From Macrostomum lignano (taxonomy: Eukaryota), in NCBI GenBank assembly GCA_002269645.1, contig NIVC01002996.1, positions 1 through 64,000 on the forward strand: a DNA stretch of 64,000 bases, written 5' to 3'. The notes beneath the pieces were generated by a model. That model saw only the letters and a list, made by a program, of their open reading frames with translations. It was not told where the DNA came from and did no database searches. Shown here piece by piece: positions 7,801-49,123 of the stretch (positions are counted from its first letter, which is position 1; every line of letters starts with the position of its first letter). Position numbers and translations under genes: made by a program.

Positions 7801-9829
7801 AGAGGCGCGGCGGACGGCGGTTCAGAGGCGGCCGCAGCCGTAGACGGCCCTACGGCGGTCGGGGCGGAGACGGACCGCCGGTTAGAGCTCTTTGGTGCCT
7901 GCCCAGTTCCCCAATTCCAGTTCTCCAACCCCAGTTCCCCAACCCCGGTTCCCCAATTCCAGTTCTCCAACCCCAGTTCCCCAACCCCGGTTCCCCAATT
8001 CCAGTTCCCCAACCCCAGTTCCCCAACCCCAGTTCCCCAACCCCGGTTCCCCAATTCCAGTTCTCCAACCCCAGTTCCCCAACCCCGGTTCCCCAATTCC
8101 AGTTCTCCAACCCCAGTTCCCCAACCCCGGTTCCCCAATTCCAGTTCTCCAACCCCAGTTCCCCAACCCCGGTTCCCCAATTCCAGTTCCCCAACCCCAG
8201 TTCCCCAACCCCAGTTCCCCAACCCCAGTTCCCCAACCCCGGTTCCCCAATTCCAGTTCCCCAACCCCAGTTCCCCTACCCCAGTTCCCCAACCCCGGTT
8301 CCCCAACCCCGGTTCCCCAATTCCAGTTCCCCAACCCCAGTTCCCCTACCCCAGTTCCCCAACCCCAGTTCCCCAACCCCGGTTCACCAATTTCAGTTCT
8401 CCAACCCCAGTTCCCCAACCCCGGTTCACCAATTTCAGTTCTCCAACCCCAGTTCCCCAACCCCGGTTCCCCAATTCCAGTTCCCCAACCCCAGTTCCCC
8501 AACCCCAGTTCCCCAACCCCGGTTCCCCAATTCCAGTTCCCCAACCCCAGTTCCCCAACCCCAGTTCCCCAACCCCGGTTCCCCAATTCCAGTTCCCCAA
8601 CCCCAGTTCCCCTACCCCAGTTCCCAACCCCAGTTCCCCAATTCCAGTTCTCCAACCCCAGTTCCCCAACCCCGGTTCCCCAATTCCAGTTCTCCAACCC
8701 CAGTTCCCCAACCCCGGTTCCCCAATTCCAGTTCCCCAACCCAGTTCCCCAACCCCAGTTCCCCAACCCCAGTTCCCCAACCCCAGTTCCCTAACCCCGG
8801 TTCCCCAACCCCCCATCCCTAACCCCAGTTCCCCAACCCCCATACCTAACCCCAGTTCCCCAACCCCCATCCCTAACCCCAGTTCCCCAACCCCAGTTCC
8901 CCAATTCCAGTTCCCCAACCCCAGTTCCCCAACCCCAGTTCCCCAACCCCCCATCCCTAACCCCAGTTCCCCAACCCCAGTTCCCCAACCCCAGTTCCCC
9001 AACCCCAGTCCCCTAACCCCGGTTCCCCAACCCCCCATCCGTAACCCCAGTTCCCCAACCCCCCATCCCTAACCCCAGTTCCCCAACCCCCCATCCCTAA
9101 CCCCAGTTCCCTAACCCCGGTTCCCTAACCCAGTTCCCAAACCCCAGTTACCCGAATCCCCTAACCTTGCCGCTCCCTCAAACTCTTCCAGATCCCCAGT
9201 CAGCCGCCCCACTCTCCCATTTCAGATGAAGCAGGGCCTGCCAGATGCGCCGCCCCCGCCTCCCAGTAGAGGCGGCGTGGCGCCCCGCCGCCGGCCCTAC
9301 ACGATGGGGCCGCCTGCTGCTGCTGGCGGCGGCCGCGGTGGTGGCGGGCCCCCCTTCCAGCCGAGGCCTCCGCCAGAGGAATTCAGCGATCGTGGCGGCT
9401 ATAGCGGCGGTCGTGGTGGCTACGGCGGCGGCCGCGGTGGTGGCGGGCCCCCCTTCCAGCCGAGGCCTCCGCCAGAGGAATTCAGCGATCGTGGCGGCTA
9501 CGGCGGCGGCCGTGGTGGCTACGGCGGCGGCCGTGGCGGCTACGGCGGCGGCCGTGGAGGCTACCGCGGCTATAGCGGCCGCGGCGGCCAGTGGAGCAGA
9601 GGCGGCGGCTCACGGAGACGCGGTAGTGGTCGCTATCCACTGCGGGGTGGAGAGGTGAGAGTGAACCGCCCTCTGTTCCCTGAATAATCGCCCTCTGCTC
9701 CCCGAATAATCGCCCTCTGCTCCCTGAATAATCGCCCTCTGCTCCCCGAATATTCGCCCTCTGCTCCCTAAGCAGCAGCCGTTTATTCCCAACCCGCAGG
9801 GAGCAGCGCAGGGAGAGTCGGAGGCGTGA
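4897..9829 (+). CDS. YBX: Y-box binding protein (cold-shock domain + RGG-rich C-terminus), 4 coding exons
   Basis: Exons 4897-4969 (MDKNES...EKKVI G|gtaag), 7546-7880 (ag|CA ACA; [28 protein letters not shown]), 9226-9654 (RGG/RGGY), 9773-9829 (stop TGA). Phases are consistent. The intron at KKVIA|T matches the conserved Y-box intron position. Confidence 0.9.
5271..6806. mobile_element. Probable outer non-autonomous DNA transposon hosting the MITE (termini catagtttg...caaactatg)
   Basis: Short inverted termini and many TATGC/TACAC subterminal motifs. 6790-6806 is the exact reverse complement of 63478-63494. No TSD found. Confidence 0.45.
5333..5914. mobile_element. MITE with TIR ccatagtc(c/t)ggatcatg and 8-bp TSD GATGTAGG, in Y-box intron 1
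   Basis: TIRs at 5333 and 5914. TSD at 5325-5332 and 5915-5922. Internal TTA(C/T)GCCA motifs. Confidence 0.8.
7052..7430. repeat. 21-bp minisatellite (gctcaaagctgcttccatt[t/c]) in Y-box intron 1
   Basis: Direct tandem copies. Confidence 0.95.
7899..9150. repeat. C-rich complex minisatellite (ccccaacccc[a/g]gtt / ccccaattccagtt) filling Y-box intron 2
   Basis: Tandem copies between the donor at 7881 and the acceptor at 9225. It has ccctaaccc variants at the 3' end. Confidence 0.95.
9665..9770. repeat. 22-bp repeat (gaataatcgccctctgctcccc) filling Y-box intron 3
   Basis: 4-5 tandem copies between the donor at 9655 and the acceptor at 9772. Confidence 0.9.
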
Positions 9830-22577: not shown

Positions 22578-25500
22578 ATGTCCTCTTCTAACGAAGAAAG
22601 TGATGAGGCCTTGTCGCCCAATCGGGCTGCTGGCCAGGGCCAGCAGGTTTTACAGTTGCAGACAGAGAGTAGCACATCAACGCAACCTGAAGCTGGTGCC
22701 TCAAGCCAACAGGCTGCACAGGTTGGAGACACAAGTAGGGATGCGAAACCACCACATGGTATGGCAGAGCAGTCAGACTTAAGTAAGGTCCTCCAGACTC
22801 TAACAATGATCCTAGAGAAAACTTGTGACAGAGAGGCTTCCGCAGCAGCTGAGAAACTTTCAAACTCGAGCCCAAAGCTACGACCACCACCACCCTTTCA
22901 ACCCCAAATGAATTTCGAACTATGGGAGACACAGTTTCTGACTTATGTTGAAGCTCATCATGTCCCAACACCTCAGCAACCAGCTGTCCTATTGTCAATG
23001 CTCGCACCTGAGTGCCAAGAATTCATTTTTAACAACTCTCTGCACCGCGAGTCCATTCAAACTGCACTAAAAAGTCTGAAAGATCGATTCACAGATTCGG
23101 GAACAGAACACAAAAGCTACTTAGAGCTTGCGGTTGCCGAACAGTTAAACTCGGAAACAACACAGGAGTTCTTTGACAGACTAACAAGACTATCAAAGTC
23201 TGCTAATCTTAAAAAACCTACCGCCGAACCCTTGGTGCGAGCTCGGTTTTGCTATGGTCTGAGAGATAAGGGTCTTGCTGAAAGACTGATCCTCCTGGGT
23301 CAAGAAAACCCAACATGGTCTGCTGAAGATTTAGCAAAAAAGGCCAGGGAAATTGCCGGTGTCAAGAAGCTCTTATCTAGTGAAGTAACTCCAGTCATCA
23401 GAGCTGCCGCCCCTGACAGAACAGCAGAATTAGAAGCCCGAATCCGCGAGCTTGAAAAACTAGTTCAACAGAATCAGACCACTCAGTCTTCAGATCATAA
23501 TTCAAAAGATTTTCAGAACTTTCCTTCACAAGTGCCGCCTGTCAATCTGGGACAATCTGGCCAGTACAAGAACAGTAGTCGTTGGTCTAAATCCCCTAAG
23601 CGATGCAATCGGTGCAGCGACCATGACCATTTAACTGCGGACTGCCCGAAACCACCGCCCTCCAATGGGGTAGGGGCAGGTGGAAGACCAACTGGTATGG
23701 CCCCAATGATGGAAATAGGAACCATAACGGTTTGGAAAGGTGGATTTGGCTTTATCCAGCCAAGTCAGATGCCAGACTCCCTCTTTTGCCATTATTCCAG
23801 CCTTGACAACGAGTTAAAACAGGTTGCAAACAGCCATCAGTTAGTAGGCACAACTGTGCAATTCTTACGCCGAGCAGATCCTGGTCACAAACATGATAGA
23901 GCAGTAGGGGTCTGTCGCTACCAAATGCCTGTCCGATGTGACCAATCCTGGGCGGCCGATACTCCAGTCGAGTCTAGTATGTTTGTGCAGTTGGGAATTG
24001 GAGACAACAAGGTCATCGCTTGCCTTGATTCAGGTTGCAATGCAAGCGTCATGGGCACCAAAGTCAGAGACCAACTGATTGCAAACGATCCAATCAACAA
24101 TACATTTATTCCTGCTAGAAAATACCAAGCTGCAACAGCATTTAATGGTACCTCGACACAGATTCTAGGCACCCTACACTGTGAAGTCAAGCTGGGCAAA
24201 ATATCACAGACTCACGTGTTCCTAGTCACAGAAGGTCAAGTTACAGACGTCCTCTTAGGAATAGACTTTATGAGAGGTTTTAACGTGAACCTGCTTGTTG
24301 CAGATGGTCAGGTAACTGTAGCGGGCGAAGTGGTACCTGTGATTGAAGGCGATCGGGGAGTCTTTCAAGCTCGCAGAGTCACTGCAGCTTGCAACGTGCA
24401 GTTACCCCCCAGATCAGAGACCATGGTGCCAAGCCGAGTCATTGGTGCAGATCCTGGCTCTCCTGGATTCCTGGGCACCAAGCTCTTTTGTTCTGACTCG
24501 GAATTCTTTGTGGCTCATTCTGTGGATAGTGTGAGCAGCACTGGTCATGTCCTGGTACGCCTATTGAATAGTGGCAACCAGCCGTCCGAAATTGCTGCGG
24601 GACAGGAGATCGCCTCCTTTCAAAGCTTAAGAGTTGGTGAGACCATCTCGCACACTGCTCTCACCGAGAAGGACTTCTCAGTTAGCAGTTCCAAAGATCT
24701 GGGAACCAAGCTTGCTAGACTTCCTGACCCTGATCTTGGCACAGCATCTTGGCTAAAGAAGCAGTTCAAACTAGAAGAGTCCACCCTGTCAGAAACCCAG
24801 TTGACAATAACATTAAAACTGTTAAACTATTTCCTCAGTGCGATATCTAAAAGTGACACGGATTTAGGGAAAACACACCTTCACGAGATGGCTATTGAGC
24901 TCAACGAACCAACCTGCCGACCCATCTCGCAACCCTCAAGACGCACAACACCAGCGCAAAAAGAATTTTTAGATCGGCACATAAACCAGCTAATTGAACA
25001 AGGAGTAATCGAAGAAAGCAACTCAGAATGGGCTTCTCCCATAGTCTTAGTTAGGAAAAAAGACGGCTCGCAGCGCCTTTGCATTGATTACCGTAGTGTC
25101 AACAAAGTCATAAAACCGTGCACCTTTCCGCTGCCTCTAATAGAGGAGTCCTTTGATAGCTTAGCGGGGTCAAAGGTATTCTCAAGTTTAGATCTTACAT
25201 CTGCCTACTGGCAGGTAGGTATCCGAGAACAGGACCGTGATCTCACGGCCTTCACATGTCCCCAGGGGACCTATCGCTGGAAAGTTGTCCCATTCGGGAT
25301 AAAAACAGCCCCAGCGAACTTTGCCAAGTTGATGCACAAAGTTTTCCGACCTTTATTAATGCGCGTCAGCCTCATCTACTTGGACGACATCATTATAAAA
25401 GCCAGAGACAATGACGAAATGATCGTCCACCTGGCCCTTGTCCTTTGGCAACTTAAAAAGGCCAATCTAAAAATCAAGCCATCGAAATGTGAACTTTTTA

Positions 25501-26609
25501 AGGATCGAGTTCGTTTCTTAGGATTCGTCGTCTCCTCCCAGGGCATAGAAGCAGATCCGACTAAGATCGACGCTGTTAGAAACTGGTGCAAGCCAACAGA
25601 CAAGAGGCAATTACTAGCTTTTCTTGGATTCGCGAATTACTACAGGAAATTTGTAGCTCGATTTTCTGTAATCGCATCTCCTCTGTATTCGTTGGCCAAA
25701 GGGTCATCAAAATTCTGCTGGCTCGAACATCACGACAGAGCATTTGAAGAGTTGAAGGCCAATTTATGTGCTCCTCCAGTTCTAGCATATCCTGACCTCA
25801 AGCCGTCAGCTGGGCCCTTCATCTTGGACTGTGACTCCTCGCTCGAAGGAGTTGGCGGAGTATTGTCACAAGAAGGCCCAGATGGACAAGAGCACGTTGT
25901 GGCGTACGCGTCCAAGAAATTCACGCACTCCCAGCGGAACTATTGTGCTACTATGCGCGAACTACTTGGCTTGGTCATTATGTTAGAACACTTCAGAACG
26001 TACCTCTTGGACCGCAGTTTTCTGGTGCGTTCCGATGCAGCAGCCTTGCAGTGGCTGCACACCAAAAAACATAGCACGGGCATGCTAGCTCAGTGGCTGG
26101 CAACCATTGACGTCTACAACTTTAAGGTATGTCAGACACCACTGGAACGACTTGCGGAGTATGACTTCTCAGTGGAGCATCGTCCTGGCCGTGATCATGT
26201 TAACGCGGATATGCTCAGCCGCAACCCCAGGTTTAGGTCAGATCACCATGACTGCCCAACGTGCAGCAAAATCCCTGCTTTTCAAGACAAATTTAGGAAG
26301 TTGGAGGAGCAAAGGTGCCAGGACGAGGATGAGGATACAGACAGCATGCCCGCTGTGCAGCTGAGAACAGCACAAATAGACGCTTGCTGCCAGACGGAGC
26401 CCCACCAATCAAACCAAGAGCCGAAGTATCCTTCCGAGATTTTGACCAGCCATGAAGGGTCGGATGAGGTCAGAAGCCATCGGTCCTTAGCTTGCCTTCG
26501 ACAGCCCAGGAACCGGACCCGGAGGGAGAAACATCTGAGGATGAGATGTCAGAAAACTCCGAGAATCTATGGGCTAGAGAAGCTCAAGAATCTAGCACAG
26601 ATCTCGTGA
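22578..26609 (+). CDS. Gag-Pol polyprotein: Gag, CCHC knuckle, cold-shock domain, aspartic protease, dUTPase-like relic, RT, RNase H
   Basis: CNRCSDHDHLTADC (23604-23645); GTITVWKGGFGFI..SLFCHYS (CSD); CLDSG; WASPIVLVRKKDG.RLCIDYR; LDLTSAYWQV; YLDDIII; ILDCDSS...YASKK...RELLGLV...NADMLSR. Confidence 0.95.
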   Translation: MSSSNEESDEALSPNRAAGQGQQVLQLQTESSTSTQPEAGASSQQAAQVGDTSRDAKPPHGMAEQSDLSKVLQTLTMILEKTCDREASAAAEKLSNSSPKLRPPPPFQPQMNFELWETQFLTYVEAHHVPTPQQPAVLLSMLAPECQEFIFNNSLHRESIQTALKSLKDRFTDSGTEHKSYLELAVAEQLNSETTQEFFDRLTRLSKSANLKKPTAEPLVRARFCYGLRDKGLAERLILLGQENPTWSAEDLAKKAREIAGVKKLLSSEVTPVIRAAAPDRTAELEARIRELEKLVQQNQTTQSSDHNSKDFQNFPSQVPPVNLGQSGQYKNSSRWSKSPKRCNRCSDHDHLTADCPKPPPSNGVGAGGRPTGMAPMMEIGTITVWKGGFGFIQPSQMPDSLFCHYSSLDNELKQVANSHQLVGTTVQFLRRADPGHKHDRAVGVCRYQMPVRCDQSWAADTPVESSMFVQLGIGDNKVIACLDSGCNASVMGTKVRDQLIANDPINNTFIPARKYQAATAFNGTSTQILGTLHCEVKLGKISQTHVFLVTEGQVTDVLLGIDFMRGFNVNLLVADGQVTVAGEVVPVIEGDRGVFQARRVTAACNVQLPPRSETMVPSRVIGADPGSPGFLGTKLFCSDSEFFVAHSVDSVSSTGHVLVRLLNSGNQPSEIAAGQEIASFQSLRVGETISHTALTEKDFSVSSSKDLGTKLARLPDPDLGTASWLKKQFKLEESTLSETQLTITLKLLNYFLSAISKSDTDLGKTHLHEMAIELNEPTCRPISQPSRRTTPAQKEFLDRHINQLIEQGVIEESNSEWASPIVLVRKKDGSQRLCIDYRSVNKVIKPCTFPLPLIEESFDSLAGSKVFSSLDLTSAYWQVGIREQDRDLTAFTCPQGTYRWKVVPFGIKTAPANFAKLMHKVFRPLLMRVSLIYLDDIIIKARDNDEMIVHLALVLWQLKKANLKIKPSKCELFKDRVRFLGFVVSSQGIEADPTKIDAVRNWCKPTDKRQLLAFLGFANYYRKFVARFSVIASPLYSLAKGSSKFCWLEHHDRAFEELKANLCAPPVLAYPDLKPSAGPFILDCDSSLEGVGGVLSQEGPDGQEHVVAYASKKFTHSQRNYCATMRELLGLVIMLEHFRTYLLDRSFLVRSDAAALQWLHTKKHSTGMLAQWLATIDVYNFKVCQTPLERLAEYDFSVEHRPGRDHVNADMLSRNPRFRSDHHDCPTCSKIPAFQDKFRKLEEQRCQDEDEDTDSMPAVQLRTAQIDACCQTEPHQSNQEPKYPSEILTSHEGSDEVRSHRSLACLRQPRNRTRREKHLRMRCQKTPRIYGLEKLKNLAQIS

Positions 26610-29020
26610 GATTGATTGAGGCCGTTGAAGGGAAATCTCCAAGACTAACTAAGGTTGAAGTCCAGGACTGCAGTCGTGAAATTCGAACGCTTTGGGCCAT
26701 GTTTGACGAACTCGAGGTTGTAAATGGCCTTCTGACTCGCGTCAAACCCGCTAAGCAGGGCCAAGTCAGTCAGCGACTCATAATCATACCAGAGACAGCA
26801 GATGTTGATGAGCTAGTTTCCTGCTATCACAGAGACATTAATCACTGCGGAATCAACAAAACAGTCCGGGCCTTAAAACAAAGGTTCCAAATCACAAACC
26901 TCGAAGTATTCGTGAAGGGAATCATTGCTGAATGCGAGGTATGCTGCCGCACTAAGAAGAACAAACGGAAGAATAAAGAACCATTAGAACCAATTTTATC
27001 AGGCTATCCAAATCAAATTGTGCACGTTGACCACGCAGGGCCTTTCCCAGAGCAGGAGGGCAACCGTTACTTGCTGGTGCTAGTAGATAACTTTTCTGGG
27101 TATGTAGAGATCGTGCCTGTTCCAGACGTCTCGGCCGCAACTACCGCCACAGTTATACTAACCGAGTGGATAGTTCGATATGGCACTATGGAGAAACTTG
27201 TTTCGGATAATGGCACGGCCTTCATAAATAAAACGGTAGCGGAGCTCACCAGACTACTTGAAATAGACATGGCACGTATCACCGCACACAGGCCGCAATC
27301 AAACGGTAAAGCGGAAAGGACCATACAATCAATCAAAGCGCAGATTCGTGCAATTTGCCTTGAAAAAAGAGTCAATTGGGTCTATGCAGCTCGTTTGGCC
27401 GGTCTTTCAATCCGGACGACTGTGGCCGAATCCACAGGCTGGACCCCAGCCAGGCTATTTTTCGGTCGGGAACTTGTGCTGCCTCTAGACCTGCTGTTCA
27501 ACCCGCCAAGGCACGACAGGTATGATCCAGACTGTTATGCACACAAGCTGCACAAACTATTGGTGGAGGTATCGGCGATCGCCCGCATGGAGCGAGGTAA
27601 GGCCCAACAGAGGCAAAAGCGGAATTATGATCGTAATACCATTCACTCCAACTTCGAAATCGGAGAACTGGTGTGGGTACTCAACCCCGACCATCGGGGA
27701 TTAGACTCAGCCGTCTGGTTAGGGCCATACAAAGTAGTTCAAAAGGTTTCTGAGCGAAACTACCGCCTCATTCCCGAATTCGCTCGCATCAATCCAATCT
27801 GCCAAACACCAAATCCGAGTCATAACATCTACAACGTAGACCGAATGAAGCGGTGTATCCGCAAGCAAACGTACCAAGATATCGCCGACCGGTTCGAACT
27901 CAGGGTCCCAGCTCTGATTCCACCTTCGAGATTAGGCCAACTGGATGATCAATCCGAGTCTCGCAGTGACTCCTGGGGTTCATCGGCCACTACCTGCAGT
28001 GAGCCGGAACCAGAAGCTGAAGTTCCCAACACACAGGATGACGAAGCGCCTGATCCACCGCACACATCAGCGCCTGATCCACCACACATACCAGCGCCTG
28101 ATCCACCGCGCACATTAGCGCCTGATCCACCGCACACATCAGCGCCTGATCCACCGCACACATCAGCGCCTGATCCACCGAACACATCAGCGCCTGATCC
28201 ACCACACACACCAGCGCCTGATCCACCGCATCCACCAGCGCCTGGTCCACCGCACACATCAGCGCCTGATCCACCGCGCACATTAGCGCCTGATCCACCG
28301 CACACATCAGCGCCTGATCCACCGCACACATCAGCGCCTGATCCACCGAACACATCAGCGCCTGATCCACCGCGCACATCAGCGCCTGATCCACCGCATC
28401 CACCAGCGCCTGGTCCACCGCATCCACCAGCGCCTGGTCCACCGCACACATCAGCGCCTGATCCACCGCGCACATTAGCGCCTGATCCACCGCACACATC
28501 AGCGCCTGATCCACCGCACACATCAGCGCCTGATCCACCGAACACATCAGCGCCTGATCCACCGCGCACAGTAGCGCCTGATTTTCTGTGCACATCGTCG
28601 CCTGATCGTTTAGCACGAAACCAGTCGCCAAGCTTGCCTAGCGCTTTCGTAGAAGTGGCAGACTCGGGGAATCTGCAACAGGATTACCAGGTACCTGAAA
28701 TTGGTGCAGAAGTGGAAGTACCGCAGAACAACACAGAAGAACAGCTGCCAGAATCTCGAGTCCATGAAAGCAGCACTACCATGCCTGCAATGGACGGCTT
28801 GCGTCCAGAAAGTCCGACGAGTGGCAGCCATTGTATTCAAGAGACACCACCAGCGCAAGATACCGTGGATAGTGATAAAGTGGAAGCATTTCCAGCTGGT
28901 CCAGTCACTACGTCGATTACGACGACCCGTTCCGGCCGTCTGGTGCGTAAGCCTCAGCGTTTCTTGAACACTATAGTGCGTCTGTGTTCGAGGAACGGAC
29001 ATTTAAGCAACAGCGCCTAG
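26468..29020 (+). CDS. Integrase (separate frame, -1 relative to gag-pol) with Pro-rich repeat tail
   Basis: HHCC (YHRDINHCG...CEVC), D-D-E (VHVDHAGP, LVSDNG, SNGKAER), GPY, and terminal TRSGRLVRKPQRF. The frame is open from 26468. Confidence 0.92.
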   Translation, partial: GQKPSVLSLPSTAQEPDPEGETSEDEMSENSENLWAREAQESSTDLVRLIEAVEGKSPRLTKVEVQDCSREIRTLWAMFDELEVVNGLLTRVKPAKQGQVSQRLIIIPETADVDELVSCYHRDINHCGINKTVRALKQRFQITNLEVFVKGIIAECEVCCRTKKNKRKNKEPLEPILSGYPNQIVHVDHAGPFPEQEGNRYLLVLVDNFSGYVEIVPVPDVSAATTATVILTEWIVRYGTMEKLVSDNGTAFINKTVAELTRLLEIDMARITAHRPQSNGKAERTIQSIKAQIRAICLEKRVNWVYAARLAGLSIRTTVAESTGWTPARLFFGRELVLPLDLLFNPPRHDRYDPDCYAHKLHKLLVEVSAIARMERGKAQQRQKRNYDRNTIHSNFEIGELVWVLNPDHRGLDSAVWLGPYKVVQKVSERNYRLIPEFARINPICQTPNPSHNIYNVDRMKRCIRKQTYQDIADRFELRVPALIPPSRLGQLDDQSESRSDSWGSSATTCSEPEPEAEVPNTQDDEAPDPPHTSAPDPPHIPAPDPPRTLAPDPPHTSAPDPPHTSAPDPPNTSAPDPPHTPAPDPPHPPAPGPPHTSAPDPPRTLAPDPPHTSAPDPPHTSAPDPPNTSAPDPPRTSAPDPPHPPAPGPPHPPAPGPPHTSAPDPPRTLAPDPPHTSAPDPPHTSAPDPPNTSAPDPPRTVAPDFLCTSSPDRLARNQSPSLPSAFVEVADSGNLQQDYQVPEIGAEVEVPQNNTEEQLPESRVHESSTTMPAMDGLRPESPTSGSHCIQETPPAQDTVDSDKVEAFPAGPVTTSITTTRSGRLVRKPQRFLNTIVRLCSRNGHLSNSA
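28040..28590 (+). repeat. 24-bp coding repeat (APDPPHTS)n in the integrase tail
   Basis: In-frame tandem gcgcctgatccaccgcacacatca. Confidence 0.95.
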
Positions 29021-32892: not shown

Positions 32893-35800
32893 ATGAATAA
32901 GAAGAAACGCCAGTCAATGGTCCTTTCTGATTCTGGTATGCCTAAACATAACAATTATATTCTATCATATTATGCTTTTAAATCATGCAGAGATATTTTT
33001 ATTTTAAATCTTTGTTAACTTAATTTTTGTAGATTCAGAATCGGAGAACTCAAGCCACAGGCAGGCTAAAAACTCAGAAAAAGCTTCAACCAGAGCCAAG
33101 CCATCTAGGAAGAAGCAGAAACAGCACCCTGAAACCATTTTTGTTGAGTCTGGTAAGACAGTTGGATTTGCTAAAATCAATCATGAAGCTAGAACCATTA
33201 ATCAACTTGCTAGAATCATTATCACTCACATCACTAGAATAATCAATAACATCACTTGAATCACCAGTCACTGCTAGAATCATCAATCACATCGCTAGAA
33301 TCATCAATCACATCGCTAGAATCATCAATCACATCGCTAGAATCATCAATCACATCGCTAGAATCATCAATCACATCACTAGAATCATCAATCACATCGC
33401 TAGAATCATCAATCACACCGCTAGAATCATCAATCACATCGCTAGAATCATCAATCACATCGCTAGAATCATCAGTCACATCGCTAGAATCATCAATAAC
33501 ATCGCTAGAATCATCAATCACACCGCTAGAATCATCAATCACATCGCTAGAATCATCAATCACACCGCTAGAATCATCAGTCACATCGCTAGAATCATCA
33601 ATCATATCGCTAGAATCATCAATCACATCGCTAGAATCATCAATCACATCGCTAGAATCATCAATCACACCGCTAGAATCATCAATCACATCGCTAGAAT
33701 CATCAGTCACATCGCTAGAATCATCAATCACATCGCTAGAATCATCAATCACACCGCTAGAATCATCAGTCACATCGCTAGAATCATCAATCATATCGCT
33801 AGAATCATCAATCACATCGCTAGAATCATCAATCACATCGCTAGAATCATCAATCACACCGCTAGAATCATCAATCACATCGCTAGAATCATCAATCACA
33901 TCGCTAGAATCATCAATCACATCGCTAGAATCATCAATCACACCGCTAGAATCATCAGTCACATCGCTAGAATCATCAATAACATCGCTAGAATCATCAA
34001 TCATATCGCTAGAATCATCAATCACATCGCTAGAATCATCAATCACATCGCTAGAATCATCAATCACATCGCTAGAATCATCAATCACATCACTAGAATC
34101 ATCAATCACATCGCTAGAATCATCAATCACACCGCTAGAATCATCAATCACACCGCTAGAATCATCAGTCACATCGCTAGAATCATCAATAACATCGCTA
34201 GAATCATCAATCATATCGCTAGAATCATCAATCACATCGCTAGAATCATCAATCACACCGCTAGAATCATCAATCACATCGCTAGAATCATCAATCACAC
34301 CGCTAGAATCATTAATAACATCGATAGAATCATCAATCACATCGCTAGAATCATCAATAACATCGATAGAATCATCAATCACATCGCTAGAATCATCAAT
34401 CACACCGCTAGAATCATCAATCACATCGCTAGAATCATCGTCAAAACGCTGTTTCCCCATTGCGCCGCTTCCAGACGGCGAGGCCTCGCCGCCGCAGTCG
34501 CCCAGCAAGCGGCAAGGCAAGGCGGCCGGCGGTGCCAATAAGCAGGCCGGCTCATCCTCGGGCAAGAAGTCGGCGGCGGCTACAAAGAGTCCGAAGGCTG
34601 GCGGGCCGCCTGCGCAGAAGAACACTCTGGATAATTACTTCAGCAGGCTTGGAGGCGCTGCCGGTAATTCAGCCAAGCCAAGTGGCAGCGTTAGCGGCGG
34701 CGGCAGCAGCGCAGCTTCAGCCTCATCGGAGCGCGTGACAAAGAAGGTCAATCCGGCTGATTTTTTCACCAGCCCGCCAGCCAGCAGCTTGGCGCGCCAG
34801 AGTCCGACTGTTCAGTCTAAAAAAGCGTCTGTGAGTCCCTTGGAATTTCTGCCAGCAACTTCTGCATAGGGCTTTCTTTTTTCCCCGTGTGACTAATAAG
34901 ATGTGTGACTAATTCATCAAGCGATGCAAATGCGCTTCAAACACAACTACAGTGACTCTAGCGCCTTAAATACGACGACTCTTTATACCGTCACCCCAGA
35001 GTCGCTGACAATAAAACGCTTCAAAGTGACTCTTAGGCAACTTTTTGGTAACGATCTCGTCGTTTTACAGTCACTTCTTTCTTATTTTACATGTTATCTG
35101 CAACGACTCATTCATCCATTGTTTGGATCCGGCCCTTGACCCATTAGATTCCTCTTGACTCTAATGAGATCCTCTTGACCCATGAGATCGTCCTCGATCC
35201 CCCTTGGCTCATGGGATTGTCCTTGACCTACCTGATCCCCCTTGACTCACGGGATCGTCCTTGACCTCCCTTGACTCATGGGATTGTCCTTGACCTACCT
35301 GATCCCCCTTGACCTCCCTTGACTCATGGGATTGTCCTTGACCTACCTGATCCCCCTTGACTCACGGGATCGTCCTTGACCTCCCTTGACTCATGGGATT
35401 GTCCTTGACCTACCTGATCCCCCTTGACTCACGGGATCGTCCTTGACCTCCCTTGACTCATGGGATTGTCCTTGACCTACCTGATCCCCTTGACTCACGG
35501 GATCGTCCTTGACCTCCCTTGACTCATGGATTGTCCTTGACCTACCTGATCCCGCTTGACTCATGGAATCGTCCTTGACTCATTGACTCAAACTCACTTC
35601 TTGACTCAGACAGCGGCTTTGGGATTCAGGCTCTGAAGTGTCAAACTTTTGTGCATCGCAAATTCCCCTCCCCTGCAGACTGCTTACGCGGAAGACCCCG
35701 ACATCATCGAGGCGTCGTTTGTTGCTTCGCCGCCGCGGTCAGCGCGGAAATCGTCAGCATCCACCGCGGCGTCCTCGTCCGATTCTAGAGCGAAGCCCGG

Positions 35801-38800
35801 CCCAGCCCAGCATGAGAAGCCGCTCCTGACTCAGCAGCAGCAGCAACGCGGAAGCGAAGGTGCCTCCGCGCCGCAGCCACCTGCCGGGCCAGAGAAATCT
35901 CCGTTGAAACGGTCGGCAACAACGCCCGAGGCAAAGCGGTCCAGCTATCTGGCTTACCTGCATAGGGACGGGCCGAAACACCTGGGCGAATTGCGCCTGC
36001 CAAAGGCAGGTGGATAGTTATTTAAAGTTTTATTGATCATAGCTGCTTTGTGCGGCTCGTAAGATTTGGTCGCAGCTCTCATAGATCCTTCACCGCAACT
36101 CTCTCGGATACCGAAGCCATAGCCCTCCCAAATCCCTAAGATTCCACCCTTCCAGATCCCAAACATTCCACCCTTCCAGATCCCAAACATTCCACCCTTC
36201 CAGATCCTTAAGATTCCACCCTTCCAGATCCCAAACATTCCACCCTTCCAGATCCCTAAGATTTTAACCTTCCAGATCCCTAAGAGCCCCTTCCAGATCC
36301 CTAAGATTCCACCCTTCCAGATCCCATCCACCCTTCCAGATCCCTAAGATTCCACTCTTCCAGATCCCTAAGATTCCACCCTTCCAGATCCCTAAAATTT
36401 TAACCTTCCAGATCCCTAAGATCCCCTTCCAGATCCTAAACATTCCACCCTTCCAGATCCCAAAGATTCCACCCTTCCAGATCCCAAACATTCCACTCTT
36501 CCAGCTCCTAAACATTCCACCCTTCCAGATCCCAAAGATTCCACCCTTCCAGATCCCAAAATTTAAACCTTCCAGATCCCAAAATTTTAACCTTCCAGAT
36601 TCCTAAGATACCCGTCCAGATCCTAAACATTCCACCCTTCCAGCTCCTAAACATTCCACCCTTCCAGATCCCTAAGATTCCACCCTTCCAGATCCCTAAT
36701 ATTCCACCCTTCCAGATCCCTAATATTCTACCCTTCCAGATCCCTAATATTCCACCCTTCCAGATCCCTAAAATTTTAACCTTCCAGATCTCTAAGATTC
36801 CACCCTTCCAGATCCCTAACCATATCAACTCTCTTTACCCTAACGAATTCACCCCACAGGCGAAGCCAAACAGCCTCAGCGGCATGACAATCGTGGTCAC
36901 TGGCGTGCTGGACTACGTCGAGAAGGAGGCCTGCGAAGCTCTGCTGCATCAGTGCGGCGCCAAGGTTACCAAAAGCGTCAGCAAGCGAACCAGCATGCTG
37001 GTGGTCGGCCGGGAGCCCGGAGCCAGCAAGCTGGACAAGGCCAAGCAGGCCGGGGTTCGCTGCTGCCCGGAGAAGGAATTCTACAGTTTCCTGTGCGAGA
37101 AGCTTGGACAGCCGCCAGAAGCTGATCCAGACGATGAGGCGGTGGAAATGATGGGCGTCGAACCCGGAGCTGGAACTGGAGCCGGCGCTGATCAGCGCAG
37201 CAATGGATCCTCGGGTGCTAGAGATGTGGAGCGCAGCGGAGGTGGCAGAAGCCAGGCTGAGGAGCGCAGCGGCGGCGGCAGAAGCCAGGCTGAGGAGCGC
37301 AGCGGCGGCGGCAGAAGCCAGGCTGAGGAGCGCAGCGGCGGCGGCAGAAGCCAGGCTGAGGAGCGCAGCGGCGGCGGCAGAAGCCAGGCTGAGGAGCGCA
37401 GCGGCGGCGGCAGAAGCCAGGCTGAGGAGCGCAGCGGCGGCGGCAGAAGCCAGGCTGAGGAGCGCAGCGGCGGTGGCAGAAGCCAGGCTGAGGAGCGCAG
37501 CGGCGGCGGCAGAAGCCAGGCTGAGGAGCGCAGCGGCGGCGGCAGAAGCCAGGCTGAGGAGCGCAGCGGCGGCGGCAGAAGCCAGGCTGAGGAGCGCAGC
37601 GGAGGCGGCAGAAGCCAGGCTAAAGATCAGAGAGAGGGCGGGAAAGCCGGAGCGGAGGGCCAGCCGCAGCAGCAGCTGATGTGGGTGGACAAATACAAGC
37701 CGCGCTCGCTGAAGCAGATAATCGGCCAGTCTGGTCCGGCCAGCTGTGCCAGCAAGCTGGTGGCCTGGCTGTCCAGCTGGCACAGGCACCTGGCCAGCGG
37801 GGTGAAGCGCGGCGTGGCGCAGCCGTTTCAGCGCTTCAACAACGACGGCTCCGCCTTGAAGGCGGCGCTGCTGTCCGGTCCGCCCGGCATCGGCAAGACG
37901 ACCACCGCCACTCTGGCCTGCAAGGAGCTCGGCTTCGAGTGCCTGGAGTTGAACGCCTCGGACACTCGCAACAAAAGATCTCTGCACGAGATTGTCGGCG
38001 AAGCGCTGGGCACCTTTTCTGTTGGCGCCATGTTCGGCGGCGGCGGTGGCGGAGGCGGCACCGAGGAAGGTCGCCGACGCTGCATCGTTATGGATGAGGT
38101 GGACGGCATGGCCGGCAACGAGGACCGGGGCGGAGTGGCCGAGCTCATCCAGCTGATCAAGGCCAGCCAGGTACGGCGTGTACTTTTGTGAATTTTGCGG
38201 CGCACCTGGATCTCAAACCGAAGCTTTTCTATTGGGTCTGTCCTGATGGCACCTGAATCTTGTCTACAAGCACCTGAATCTCCCCTATAACACCTGAATC
38301 TCCCCTAAAACACCTGAAGTTCTACTCAAACCCCTGAAGTTCTACTCAAGCCCCTGAAGCTCCACTACAACCCCTGAAGCTCCACTACAACCCCTGAAGC
38401 TCCACTACAACCCCTGAAGCTCCACTACAACCCCCTGAAGCTCCACTAAAATCTCCTAAAGCTCAATTACAACCCCTGAAGCTCCACTAAACCCCCTGAA
38501 GCTCTACTACAACCCCCTGAAGCTCCACTACAAACGCCTGCCCTGGATGTTCTCTGTCGGCCTCTGAATTTAATTTGTCACACCTGCTCCCAAACCTCTT
38601 AGACTCAGCCTAAACTGACTACTTACAGGAGCTAAACGGCTAATTTTGCTAAATCATCTCTGCCAGGTGCCAATAATCTGCATCTGCAACGACCGCAACC
38701 ACATGAAGATGCGGTCGCTGGCCAACTATTGTTTCGATCTGCGCTTCCAGCGGCCGAGGCCGGAGCAGATCCGAGCGGCCGCCATGTCCATCGCCAGCCG

Positions 38801-43959: not shown

Positions 43960-44610
43960 GGGGGGGGGGGGGTTTCACAAACTCGAAATTTCACAACGTC
44001 GAAAGCACCTTCTTTCACAAGGTCGAAATTTCATAAGGTCGAAATTTCATAACATCGAAAACTCAAATAGCAGCCACTTTCACAAGGTCGAAACTTCACA
44101 AGGTCGAAATTTCACAACATCGAAAACTTTAGCAAAGGACTTCATAAGGTCGAAAATTCACAAGGTCGAAATTTCAAAACATCGAAAACTTTAGCAAGAG
44201 ACTTCATAAGGTCGAAATTTCATAAGGTCGAAATTTCACAACGTAGAAAACTACTGTATGGTTCTTGATAGATAAAATTTTCGACTTTGTGAAATTTCGA
44301 GCTTATGAAGTTTCGACCTTGTGAAAATGGCTGCACTTGAGTTTTCGATGTTATGAAATTTCGACCTTGTGAAATCTCTTGCTAGATTTTTCGATGTTGT
44401 GAAATTTCGACCTTGTGAAGTTTCGACCTTGTGAAAGTGGCTGCTATTTGAGTTTTCGATGTTGTGAAATTTCGACCTTATGAAATTTCGACCTTATGAA
44501 GTCTCTTGCTAAAGTTTTCGATGTTTTGAAATTTCGACCTTGTGAAGTTTCGACCTTGTGAAATAATTTACTTTTCGACGTTGTGAAATTTCGACCTTGT
44601 GAAAGCACCC
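43960..44610. mobile_element. Foldback (FB/MULE-like) element with internally repetitive inverted arms and 9-bp TSD
   Basis: Left arm built of tttcacaaggtcgaaa units and right arm of tttcgaccttgtgaaa units. G...C termini. TSD CAGCTGTTT at 43951-43959 and 44611-44619. Confidence 0.8.
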
Positions 44611-44611
44611 C

Positions 44612-45670: not shown

Positions 45671-47206
45671 ATGTCAAACTCCAACAACAGCATAAAAGTA
45701 AGTCCGTTTCGGGGCCTCCGAAATTCAATCCAGTCAGCACCGAAACAGCTCAAACATGAGACTTATTCTGTTGGCAGCTTGCGCCGCGCTGCTTTGCACG
45801 CTAGTGGTAAGTTGAACTCTGTTGCACACAACTATTCAGCACTAACTCCAGCTTCAATTCGAATAATTACGAAAATCATTTGCACTTTTCAGCTCTCAGC
45901 GCCACCACCAAATGCGAAGAATAAGCTGAAGAAGCCAGCAGCCGCTAACGCTGCGGCCACCGCTGGATCCGCTAAGAAGCCCGCTATGGCTCAGAAGCCT
46001 TGCAAAAGACCGCCAAGGAGGAGCGCAGAGGAAAGACGGGGCAGAAGCGAGAGGCGGAGTCGCCGCCAATCCAGGCGGCAGAACCGACGCGCTGCAAGAC
46101 GTGCCCGTAGAAGCCGCGATGTGAGAAGAAGAGGCGGCCGTCGTGTCAGACGCGCCAGACGTAACGGTAGACGCGCTGCAAGACTTGCCAGACGTAACGG
46201 TAGACGCGCTGCAAGACTTGCCAGACGTAACGGTAGACGCGCTGCAAGACGTGCCCGCAGAAGCCGCGATGTGAGAAGAAGAAGCGGCCGTCGTGTGAGA
46301 CGTGCCAGACGTAACGGTAGACGCGCTGCAAGACGTGCCAGACGTAACGGTAGACGCGCTGCAAGACGTGCCCGCAGAAGCCGCGATGTGAGAAGAAGAG
46401 GCGGCCGTCGTGTCAGACGCGCCAGACGTAACGGTAGACGCGCTGCAAGACGTGCCAGACGTAACGGTAGACGCGCTGCAAGACGTGCCCGCAGAAGCCG
46501 CGATGTGAGAAGAAGAGGCGGCCGTCGTGTCAGACGCGCCAGACGTAACGGTAGACGCGCTGCAAGACGTGCCAGACGTAACGGTAGACGCGCTGCAAGA
46601 CGTGCCCGCAGAAGCCGCGATGTGAGAAGAAGAAGCGGCCGTCGTGTGAGACGTGCCAGACGTAACGGTAGACGCGCTGCAAGACTTGCCAGACGTAACG
46701 GTAGACGCGCTGCAAGACGTGCCAGACGTAACGGTAGACGTGCTGCAAGACGTGCCAGACGTAACGGTAGACGCGCTGCAAGACGTACTCGCAGAAGCCG
46801 CGATGTGAGAAGAAGAGGCGGCCGTCGTGTGAGACGCGCCAGACGTAACGGTAGACGCGCTGCAAGACGTGCCCGCAGAAGCCGCGATGTGAGAAGAGGC
46901 GGCCGTCGTGTCAGACGCGCCAGACGTAACGGTAGACGCGCTGCAAGACGTGCCAGACGTAACGGTAGACGCGCTGCAAGACGTGCCAGACGTAACGGTA
47001 GACGTGCTGCAAGACGTACTCGCAGAAGCCGCGATGTGAGAAGGAGAGGCGGCCGTCGTGTGAGACGCGCCAGACGTAACGGTAGACGCGCTGCAAGACG
47101 CGCCAGACGTAACGGTAGACGCGCTGCAAGACGTGCCAGACGTAACGGTAGACGCGCTGCAAAACGTGCCAGACGCAACCGCAGGCGCGCTGCAAGACGC
47201 GGTTAA
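45671..47206 (+). CDS. Large Arg-rich protamine-like / sperm nuclear basic protein candidate
   Basis: Proposed exons 45671-45697 (MSNSNNSIK|gtaagt) and 45893-47206 (ttttcag|, same phase). Lys/Ala/Pro segment KKPAAANAAATAGSAKKPA, then RRARRNGRRAA / RRARRSRDVRRRGGRRV repeats. AATAAA ~65 nt after the stop. The frame is also open upstream to 45386, so the start is uncertain. Confidence 0.62.
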   Translation: MSNSNNSIKVSPFRGLRNSIQSAPKQLKHETYSVGSLRRAALHASGKLNSVAHNYSALTPASIRIITKIICTFQLSAPPPNAKNKLKKPAAANAAATAGSAKKPAMAQKPCKRPPRRSAEERRGRSERRSRRQSRRQNRRAARRARRSRDVRRRGGRRVRRARRNGRRAARLARRNGRRAARLARRNGRRAARRARRSRDVRRRSGRRVRRARRNGRRAARRARRNGRRAARRARRSRDVRRRGGRRVRRARRNGRRAARRARRNGRRAARRARRSRDVRRRGGRRVRRARRNGRRAARRARRNGRRAARRARRSRDVRRRSGRRVRRARRNGRRAARLARRNGRRAARRARRNGRRAARRARRNGRRAARRTRRSRDVRRRGGRRVRRARRNGRRAARRARRSRDVRRGGRRVRRARRNGRRAARRARRNGRRAARRARRNGRRAARRTRRSRDVRRRGGRRVRRARRNGRRAARRARRNGRRAARRARRNGRRAAKRARRNRRRAARRG

Positions 47207-48460
47207 ATGGAGTGTTTCCACAATAGCCTTATGATTCGGTTTTGGACCTTTCTTTTGTGGGTGTTTTAAATAAATTATGTTGGTCATACGATAATCGTAC
47301 CTATTTTGTATTTCTTTGTTTGCTTTTTCATTTTTATTGCTGGAATTCGGCCACCTTTACCAGCATGCGAGTTTCTGCAAACTGCGATATCGAGAAAATC
47401 TGATATGCGTTGCCTGAAATTTGATTGTACATGTAGAAGTACAGAAAATTAAACCACTTTTGATTGGTGTGATCGACCAATGAATATATAATTATGTTTT
47501 GTGCCATTTGTGCCATATGCAATAATTTATAAATTTATTCCATAAGTGACAAGTAAAATGCGAACGAAAATTAACAGCAAAACAGCGAAAATTTTGTGTC
47601 CTCAAATTAGAATTTAGAATGAGCGAGTCAAACTAACAGACCAGTTAGTTCTAATTCGGTAAAGTACATGTTGTTCACGTTTTTATCATTGCTTGGAAAT
47701 ATTACGATTTAACGTTATAGATATTAAGTTTCTTTAGTGTGCTGGTGAACGCATCTCTGTCCTCCCGTTTGAATCAGATTTCCAGCTTTTGAGTTCTGGA
47801 TCCCAAATTTATCTCTGTTATCTCAAAGCCTAGGTTTGGAACTCGGAAGGGCGACTAGTGCCCTAGCTTTAAATTTGATTTAGGAAACTCTTACACACAC
47901 CTGGTCGTAAATCAATGTTATTAAGGTAACAATCATACTTTAATAGCATAATTTGATAGTTATACATCGCCTTATTGGCAATTCCTGTCTGAAAGCCAGA
48001 TATGTTGGAGTGTTGAGTCGTCGGGGCAGATGAGCGTGGTCAGGGGCAGGCAGAGAGACTGAAAAGTAGAGCACACGTATATTTATATAGGAACGGCATG
48101 CTGCGAGAGAGAGGACGAAAACTTCTCTTTACCATGGTATCGTTCCCGGGCAGGGGTTTCAGTGTGCATGGCTTGGGGGGTGGGGGTAAAATTCTAACCC
48201 CAACCCTGCCTTCTACAAACGTACATTAAAAGCGCTCTAGCCGTCTGCCGTCTGTGGCCTTGCCCAAGTGTCCTATGTACATCTATTTGATTTCATTCTC
48301 TTACCAGTGTGTGGGCCGCCCTTCCCTCCCCCACTAGGCTTAGAAAAGATTCCACGGCAGTTAAACATGACGTGTCAGTAGAGACCTTTTATTTTCTCAA
48401 TTCAATAACATTGGCCTAACTGGCATAACTGCCTATTCTACTCGTGTATTTGAATTAAAA

Positions 48461-49123
48461 ATGAACTTCAGTCTATTGATACTTTTGTCCCTATTGGGCG
48501 CGGCCACTGCGTTCGACAAATATCCGAAAGAATTTGTTTTCGAGCTACCAGATAATGAGGAATTTTGCTTCTACGAGGAATTCGCGCAGGACGCCGCAAA
48601 AGAAGCGTTTAACACAGTGTTCCGCGTGATTCGCGGCGGTAACAATGACGTGGACTTTGCAATCACTGCTCCGGACAACCAGAAAGTTTACGAGAAGCAG
48701 AAGCAACACTTTGATGAGCACGAGCACACTTTCCGTCCTGGCACTTATTCCTTCTGCTTTGGCAACAAGTTTTCAACCATCACGCACAAGCAGATCTACT
48801 TCGCCCTGAACCGCAAACGGCCGGAAAGTCTGGCTGAAGAGGCCGGAGCAACCAACGTACCGACAGCAATGTCTCTGCTGCAGACCAAGATGGAGGCCAT
48901 CCACGAATATCTGGTCACTGTGGAGACGGTGCAGTCAATCTACAAGGTGCGCGAAGCCGAGGGACGCGAGATTAGCGAGGATCTGAACGAGCGCGTCATG
49001 GTATTCAGCGCCATTCTGGCCATGGCTGTGGTGGTTTGCGGCTTCGGACAGGTTGTGGTGCTCAGGACTTTCTTCTCAGACAAAAAATCCGTCTCTTATC
49101 CTCGCTATCCTACCAAGGCCTGA
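48461..49123 (+). CDS. TMED7: p24/GOLD cargo receptor, TMED3/TMED7-like (p24 gamma), intronless
   Basis: Signal peptide; FELPDNEEFCFYEE; GGNNDVD; YSFCFGNKFSTITHK; TM helix and GQVVVLRTFFSDKK tail. Orthology to TMED3 versus TMED7 is not resolved. Confidence 0.9.
   Translation: MNFSLLILLSLLGAATAFDKYPKEFVFELPDNEEFCFYEEFAQDAAKEAFNTVFRVIRGGNNDVDFAITAPDNQKVYEKQKQHFDEHEHTFRPGTYSFCFGNKFSTITHKQIYFALNRKRPESLAEEAGATNVPTAMSLLQTKMEAIHEYLVTVETVQSIYKVREAEGREISEDLNERVMVFSAILAMAVVVCGFGQVVVLRTFFSDKKSVSYPRYPTKA

Follow-up and report, generated by a model that had tools for sequence, protein, structure and literature searches.

A Macrostomum lignano repeat gene encoding a hyper-cationic, arginine-rich protein with a predicted secretion signal

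Introduction

What a protein that consists of about one half arginine (Arg) does in an animal is the question raised by a gene on the + strand of a 64,000-nucleotide (nt) stretch of Macrostomum lignano DNA (NCBI GenBank assembly GCA_002269645.1, contig NIVC01002996.1, positions 1 to 64,000; hereafter, the window). The gene is already present in the public annotation of the contig as an uncharacterised model, and in two of the three paralogous copies considered here the annotated model is truncated. The original prediction took positions 45671-47206 for a giant, protamine-like gene whose product would condense sperm chromatin. An exported polycation is more likely than a sperm DNA-packaging protein, because the protein begins with a predicted secretion signal.

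Gene model

The deposited annotation places a coding sequence (CDS) with a product of 465 amino acids (aa) at 45723-47206 on the + strand. Its span (1484 nt) exceeds the CDS (1398 nt) by 86 nt, so that one intron of 86 nt is needed, and the sole canonical intron of that length that fits lies at 45807-45892 (GTAAGT...TTTTCAG, phase 0). The gene model is built on the annotated coordinates and the product length; exact look-up of the 454-, 446- and 465-aa models, the annotated protein included, and of the antisense open reading frame (ORF) gave no match in the protein collection. The NIVC01 annotation was derived from a genome-guided transcriptome, assembled with StringTie, TACO and TBONE from RNA-seq and de novo transcripts (PMC5730564), and the annotation of the Arg-rich gene therefore reflects transcript evidence: the gene is real and transcribed. 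Two syntenic loci with the order RFC1, Arg-rich gene, p24, on contigs NIVC01001187.1 (L001) and NIVC01001409.1 (L002), retain an identical gene plan (exon 1, intron, linker, stop and AATAAA).

The annotated CDS opens at a non-ATG codon (ATT, 45723), eight codons past an in-frame TAA at 45699, and the positions that correspond to the paralogue starts are 45738 and 45735. The non-ATG start, well past the TAA, is read here as a 5'-partial ORF with the 5' end of the transcript at about 45721-45723. With a transcript start at about 45723, the first AUG is that at 45756 (A at -3). The original prediction had placed the start at an ATG at 45671, with a first exon at 45671-45697 and an intron at 45698-45892. 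This arrangement is formally possible only and is contradicted by the annotation, which starts at 45723, inside the proposed intron; the phase compatibility of that intron is trivial, since the frame is open from 45386 through the whole stretch. The features of the gene are as follows.

45690-45697, + strand: TATA-like CATAAAAG, ahead of the annotated 5' end by 26-33 nt (26-45 nt when the paralogue starts are included)
45723-45755, + strand: 5' leader, with the annotated 5'-partial CDS start
45756-45806, + strand: coding exon 1, MRLILLAACAALLCTLV, predicted n- and h-regions of the signal peptide, 100% identical in the three paralogues
45807-45892, + strand: intron of 86 nt, phase 0, GTAAGT...TTTTCAG
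45893-46015, + strand: start of exon 2, with the predicted signal-peptide end LS/APPP and a Lys/Ala/Pro-rich linker that holds the only Cys of the mature protein
46016-46084, + strand: transitional Arg/Ser/Glu/Gln segment RRSAEERRGRSERRSRRQSRRQN, with a 3-nt (AGA) in-frame indel between paralogues
46085-47161, + strand: tandem array of 'a' units (33 nt) and 'B' units (51 or 48 nt)
47162-47206, + strand: degenerate last unit KRARRNRRRAA, then RRG and the TAA stop, which is conserved in the three paralogues
47269-47274, + strand: AATAAA polyadenylation signal, 63 nt past the stop, conserved in the three paralogues

The TATA-like CATAAAAG, the region of which is identical across the three paralogues, may be a promoter element; it overlaps the end of the first exon of the original prediction, just before its GT donor at 45698. 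The AATAAA reported after the stop was found again, and directly after it the paralogue sequences diverge.

Predicted signal peptide

Exon 1 (MRLILLAACAALLCTLV) joins the LSAPPPNAK... of exon 2 in phase 0. The resulting N-terminus, MRLILLAACAALLCTLVLS/APPP, has a basic n-region, a hydrophobic core of 16 residues and small residues at -3 and -1, and its layout (MR / LILLAACAALLCTLVL / S-A-P-P-P) corresponds to the n-, h- and c-regions of a cleavable signal for the endoplasmic reticulum (ER). Its best 12-residue hydrophobicity window (2.98) was reached by none of the other 810 peptides in the window that start with ATG and have 22 codons or more. The N-terminus is thus a classic cleavable ER signal peptide by prediction, encoded by exon 1 and, if cleaved as expected, the first two codons of exon 2. 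Cleavage is likely after Ser19 (VLS/APPP), in view of the -3/-1 rule and of the disfavour of Pro at +1.

Repeat array and comparison with protamines

Exon 2 (45893-47206) is open in frame +0 for 437 codons plus TAA, about 50% of them Arg, in agreement with the Arg-rich ORF of about 440 aa first noted. The spliced product contains 48% Arg, 19% Ala and 8% Gly, with no aromatic residues, no His and a single Cys in the mature part. The Lys/Ala/Pro segment proposed ahead of the array was present (NAKNKLKKPAAANAAATAGSAKKPAMAQKP), and so were the two modules of a repeat part of more than 350 aa, which measures 377 aa and contains 208 Arg. Module 'a' is RRARRNGRRAA (11 aa, 33 nt) and module 'B' is RRARRSRDVRRRGGRRV (17 aa, 51 nt; consensus RRARRSRDVRR(R)GGRRV), with one 'B' variant of 16 aa (48 nt) that is without AGA. 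The modules do not alternate strictly, as had been stated, and follow the order aaaBaaBaaBaaBaaaaBaBaaaBaaaa (28 full units), within which a higher-order repeat a-a-B of 117 nt extends over 46181-46723 (4.6 copies, 97% identity). The last unit is varied yet basic, as described (KRARRNRRRAA-RRG*). Downstream of the predicted signal peptide, exon 2 would therefore supply a short Lys/Ala/Pro linker followed by 377 aa of fold-less Arg/Ala/Gly repeats.

On composition, the protein resembles protamines and other sperm nuclear basic proteins (SNBPs): about 50% Arg, clusters of two or three Arg between small residues, no fold when alone, and internal repetition. It could be a giant protamine-like SNBP that replaces histones in spermatids, perhaps after removal of a leader or cleavage into units. 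In line with this are the RR and RRR clusters spaced by A, S, G and V without a fold, and a short AKKP/KKPAAA stretch like that of H1 tails; some protamines are precursors with N-terminal leaders; and no SNBP of Macrostomum is described in the literature found. The N-terminus, in contrast, is a hydrophobic signal of the ER type, unlike a protamine leader, and would route the protein away from the nucleus; no protamine or protamine-like protein is known to have an ER signal peptide. Its length, too, is 4-10 times that of protamines (454-1097 aa for the three paralogues vs. about 30-110 aa), and it has neither a winged-helix domain nor a Pfam match to protamines or linker histones. The signal-free exon 1 of the original prediction, moreover, falls outside the annotated transcript. 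Compared with what defines an SNBP, the Arg content agrees, and small size or a winged helix, and a signal-free N-terminus (in silico), do not. The sperm-chromatin function originally proposed is hence unsupported and quite unlikely, and the case illustrates that a correct first exon can overturn a 'protamine' call made on composition.

Paralogous loci

Between about 45600 and the point where the array begins, a single substitution (Pro>Thr) and a single in-frame AGA indel separate the three copies; upstream of about 45600 they diverge by several percent. The arrays contain 28 (window), 51 and 75 (paralogues) full units, so that exon 2 encodes 437, 771 and 1080 aa and the predicted full-length proteins have 454, 788 and 1097 aa (50-54% Arg), with net charges of the mature form of +216 (window), +395 and +555 (paralogues). 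The units measure 33, 51 or 48 nt, and all length differences and indels among the three loci are in frame. Three paralogous loci that differ in unit number agree with the earlier view of a protein-coding gene generated by tandem expansion; unequal crossing-over of blocks of 33, 51 and 84 or 117 nt would lengthen and shorten the array, and selection would maintain the Arg reading frame.

The annotated products of the paralogues (L001, 6259-8729; L002, 5334-8734) have 324 and 880 aa, vs. 788 and 1097 aa encoded in the genome. The sequence lacking from them (1410 and 672 nt) is an exact sum of 33- and 51-nt units, and because the 'extra introns' are whole numbers of units, this suggests repeat collapse in assemblies of short-read transcripts and not real introns. 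Annotations based on short reads (324 and 880 aa) would then understate the lengths encoded in the paralogous loci.

Coding frame

At each of the three loci the array is open in three of its six frames, namely the Arg frame and two antisense frames (one Ser/Thr/Ala-rich, the other Leu/Arg/Ala-rich), so that openness of the frame is not decisive for coding, and ORF length was rejected as coding evidence. Among the 141 full units there were 19 variant sites, 10 of which were synonymous in the Arg frame (about 30% expected), as were 83 of the 110 variant occurrences. In the Ser/Thr antisense frame 3 of the 19 sites were synonymous, and a 'mucin-like' reading of that frame, which is also opposite to the annotated strand, was discarded. 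The common synonymous variants (CGC/CGT, GTG/GTC and GCC/GCT) occurred in all three paralogues, and the replacements (R>L, N>T, R>K, RR>KL, G>S and R>S) were with few exceptions confined to a single paralogue and were often conservative, a pattern consistent with purifying selection for the Arg frame. Four features together settle the strand: the orientation given in the annotation, the exon with the signal peptide, the canonical intron and the polyadenylation signal. The array is very probably protein-coding in the Arg frame, with a start at 45756 and the 86-nt intron.

A non-functional minisatellite that is open by chance, and was transcribed or annotated merely through an ORF finder, is very unlikely. 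Such an origin would be in keeping with the abundance of tandem repeats (34% of the window), with the three frames open across the array in all loci, with the absence of a homologue from the searches made, and with paralogues that are too alike for a strong test of selection. It would leave without explanation the in-frame lengths of all units and indels, the canonical phase-0 intron that links the array to a signal-peptide exon unparalleled in the window, the conserved stop and AATAAA, the excess of synonymous variants common to paralogues beside private replacements, and the derivation of the gene model from transcripts. The array thus has both frame constraint and gene signals, which a non-coding minisatellite would lack.

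Homology searches and predicted structure

Pfam returned no family for the Arg-rich protein, whether linker histone, protamine or a core domain of Mlig-ap1, the M. lignano protein compared below. Word-indexed homology searches gave no match, whether with the whole protein, with its first 113 aa or, at E<=10, with the 64 non-Arg residues of the N-terminus, and an exhaustive phmmer run against 1.84 billion representatives gave 10 weak matches (best, 1.9e-9), all rejected as unrelated periodic low-complexity proteins (KNG.RLSENEKRSKHD or RAQxEAQ repeats); these negatives are weak, as the composition filters of HMMER probably penalise the query and M. lignano products are absent from the collections searched. 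The lineage-specificity suggested earlier is consistent with these results, and the gene is lineage-restricted as far as can be seen. In the literature on Macrostomum protamines or SNBPs and on rhabdites and arginine nothing relevant was found. The supplements of the Mlig-sperm1 paper did not contain the scaffold and neighbouring-gene identifiers tried, and a paper on a seminal-fluid screen did not mention Arg-rich candidates and had no sequence or primer tables.

AlphaFold, run with the single sequence, modelled the signal peptide as a helix, the linker as disordered (residues 18-56, pLDDT <50, without secondary structure) and the repeats as three very long helices (predicted template modelling score, pTM, 0.22), with no globular domain. 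Together with the Pfam result, the long helices as the only structure agree with the earlier statement that neither a histone fold nor a winged helix is visible. A free helix is implausible at such a charge density; formation of the repeat helix upon binding of a polyanion is conceivable. Arginine-rich RNA-binding motifs, for example that of HIV-1 Rev, become helical on binding nucleic acid and are single intracellular motifs of 10-20 residues. Short Ala/Arg/Asn-rich segments of the Arg-rich protein (e.g., ARRNRRR in the terminal unit) and the helices of the AlphaFold model are similar to motifs of this type and to cell-penetrating oligo-arginines. In contrast to Rev-type motifs, the Arg-rich protein comprises hundreds of residues of such motifs behind a predicted secretion signal.

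Comparison with secreted polycationic proteins of flatworms

The nearest precedents for the Arg-rich protein come from the adhesive glands of flatworms, namely the KR regions of Mlig-ap1 and the standalone GRK-rich Mile-ap3. Mlig-ap1 is a secreted protein of 5,407 aa with more than 3,600 aa of KR repeats (isoelectric point >14) that bind anionic molecules (PMC6410801), and these repeats provide cohesion and are neutralised by anionic molecules (PMC6410801; PMC8621496). The Arg-rich protein shares with it the species, secretion (predicted here), long tandem low-complexity repeats and an extreme positive charge, and by analogy its proposed action would be purely electrostatic as well (cohesion, or binding of anionic sugars or of a releasing factor). 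The two differ in that Mlig-ap1 has a folded core (C-type lectin, vWD, C8, TIL and EGF domains) whereas the Arg-rich protein is domain-free, and in that the repeats of Mlig-ap1 contain Lys and Arg with Ser, Gly and Pro (e.g., SRKPRRKNRKSRKP) whereas those described here are almost pure Arg with Ala, Gly and Asn and very little Lys. The published Mlig-ap1 peptide SRKPRRKNRKSRKP is absent from the Arg-rich protein.

In Minona ileanae, Mile-ap3a and Mile-ap3b represent the KR/GRK-rich part as an independent protein, and RNA interference (RNAi) results in adhesive vesicles without an electron-dense core (PMC6745481). The Arg-rich gene resembles them in being an independent gene for an essentially polycationic low-complexity repeat, from which the core domains of Mlig-ap1 are missing too, and the granule-condensing role is the one that, by analogy, may apply here. 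Mile-ap3a/b differ in belonging to another flatworm order and in a repeat of Gly-Arg-Lys, not Arg-Ala. Of the traits of such polycationic gland proteins, the Arg-rich protein shows a signal peptide (in silico) and a long low-complexity array of extreme positive charge (28-75 full units at 50-54% Arg), composed of R/A/G/N and not of K/R/G/S/P. Secreted polycationic repeat proteins are already known in M. lignano; what sets the present one apart is that it has no domain, consists almost purely of Arg/Ala and shows no detectable homology.

Proposed function

By analogy with these proteins, the reading favoured here, to which we give roughly even chances, is a lineage-restricted, secreted, hyper-cationic repeat protein, grown by unequal crossing-over, that would bind and condense polyanions. 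The protein would enter the secretory pathway of a gland cell and act by charge alone, binding and condensing sulfated or acidic glycans, acidic proteins or nucleic acids. Possible roles are packing of the dense core of secretory granules, electrostatic cohesion or adhesion, and coating after release; adhesive, mucus or rhabdite, cement and prostate glands are candidates, none of which is singled out. If this holds, the gene is a standalone, domain-free, Arg-only addition to the polycationic proteins of temporary adhesion and granule packing in flatworms, a field of biomimetic interest. A secreted product would mean that a polymer in which one residue in two is arginine, with a net positive charge of several hundred, can be translated, translocated and stored by an animal, and would raise the questions of how such a polymer escapes ribosome stalling, furin-type cleavage and self-toxicity. 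Because transgenesis and RNAi exist for M. lignano, function is directly testable.

Several observations weigh against secretion of a polyanion-condensing protein by a gland. The gland context is drawn by analogy only, and the R/A/G/N repeats are unlike the S/G-R-K-P repeats of Mlig-ap1 and Mile-ap3, as compared by published description. The signal peptide is called in silico from rules and hydrophobicity, and poor translocation or an inverted topology is conceivable for a passenger of such size and positive charge. The paralogues are so nearly identical that conservation alone says little, and the wobble positions of the Arg frame are shared by the Leu/Arg/Ala antisense frame, so that the synonymous test cannot separate the two. 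Cutting by a furin-type convertase would also be expected in the secretory pathway, given 36 R-X-[K/R]-R motifs.

The charge of the flanks and the shared wobble bear on two further readings, an uncleaved membrane anchor with an intracellular poly-Arg tail, or actual translation of an antisense frame (Leu/Arg/Ala- or Ser/Thr-rich), which are taken together as highly improbable. The 15 residues past the hydrophobic core are more positive (+4) than the N-terminal flank (+2), which also counts against the favoured reading, and by the charge-difference rule a more positive C-terminal flank favours a cytosolic C-terminus; the open antisense frame -2 has as many synonymous variants as the Arg frame. 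The core of just 16 residues followed by S-A-P-P-P is, however, typical of cleaved signals. As to antisense translation, the Leu-rich frame is without an ATG, the antisense ORFs are otherwise without a signal or splice context, both are contrary to the annotated strand and the polyadenylation signal, and the Ser/Thr frame has 3 synonymous sites out of 19.

The possibility raised by the original prediction of a precursor that is cleaved into repeat units gains concreteness in a secretory context. The protein contains 36 furin-type sites (R-X-[K/R]-R) and 110 dibasic sites; each module includes G-R-R, the C-terminus reads R-R-G-stop, and no non-basic stretch longer than 2-4 residues lies between cleavage sites. 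With 36 furin-type motifs, the protein would either be shielded from cleavage, as is evidently the case for the repeats of Mlig-ap1, or serve as a precursor of oligo-Arg peptides. As a multi-copy precursor, it would be cut by a convertase at R-X-[K/R]-R and G-R-R, and trimming by a carboxypeptidase and amidation would then release dozens of oligo-Arg peptides (e.g., ...ARRN-amide), with a proposed antimicrobial or cell-penetrating activity. The predicted signal peptide ahead of the many sites argues for such processing, Gly-Arg-Arg and Arg-Arg-Gly-stop are canonical contexts for cleavage and C-terminal amidation, and the number of copies varies widely, which is also true of other multi-peptide precursors. 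Full processing at this density of dibasic sites would, however, leave fragments of 1-4 residues only, and the acidic or neutral spacers of known multi-peptide precursors are absent. The KR repeats of Mlig-ap1 share such motifs, yet an antibody against them stains adhesive footprints (PMC6410801). Processing into peptides is consequently regarded as unlikely.

Export of nearly pure polyarginine that acts on other cells or organisms, as a whole protein of 50-130 kDa (+216 to +555) or as amidated oligo-Arg peptides, is a doubtful extension of the favoured secreted polycation. Possible examples are a cell-penetrating agent, an antimicrobial one, and a component of the ejaculate that binds tissues of the partner or sperm; copy number would evolve fast under conflict or defence. 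If this were true, the protein would be among the most cationic secreted proteins known, and beyond a simple structural glue.

Neighbouring genes and other repeats of the window

The Arg-rich gene is flanked by RFC1 upstream and by a p24/GOLD gene downstream (single-exon p24 at 48461-49123); an operon with either was rejected, as the gaps are 2.1 and 1.25 kb. The window also contains a Y-box gene, a C2H2 zinc-finger ORF and a retroelement of the Ty3/gypsy type. No RNA family was found in it with Rfam, and a bacterial-type promoter scan was set aside as irrelevant here.

Tandem repeats occupy about 34% of the 64 kb. They form more than 40 arrays, the periods of which range over 12-37 nt; many arrays measure 0.5-2.4 kb, and many are intronic or intergenic. 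This share is more than double that of the M. lignano genome as a whole, 15% of which is made up of simple and tandem repeats and which also contains large duplicated blocks (PMC5730564). The RFC1 ORF (36884-38191) contains an in-frame minisatellite of 12 copies of 33 nt at 37228-37621, which encodes ERSGGGRSQAE repeats between the BRCT and AAA+ domains, so that expansion of coding minisatellites occurs in a conserved housekeeping gene of M. lignano too.

Between RFC1 and the Arg-rich gene, a foldback-like structure of about 640 bp (43966-44611) consists of two opposed arrays, of the 16-nt unit TTTCACAAGGTCGAAA and of its complement, with arms of up to 164 nt that are 91-95% complementary and flanked by G7/C4 runs; it may be a foldback or miniature inverted-repeat transposable element. 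The Ty3/gypsy-type retroelement (22578-29020) has two long ORFs (protease, reverse transcriptase and RNase H; integrase). Its gag-side region has a CCHC knuckle followed by a weak match to the cold-shock domain (E 2.4e-4, below the Pfam cutoff), and its integrase ORF ends in a 24-nt minisatellite that encodes APDPPHTS repeats.

A putative ORF rich in Ser/Ala/Gly/Lys and ending at 34869 is preceded by an array of 60 copies of 21 nt (33188-34439) that is open as (LESSITS)n, for which Pfam gave spurious coiled-coil matches only. At 7515-9153, the cold-shock-domain exon of the Y-box gene (E 1.7e-26) abuts an array with a 14-nt period (about 90 copies), presumably intronic because 14 is not divisible by 3. 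Past this array, at 9226-9687, there is a coding repeat rich in Gly/Arg/Tyr (RGG type).

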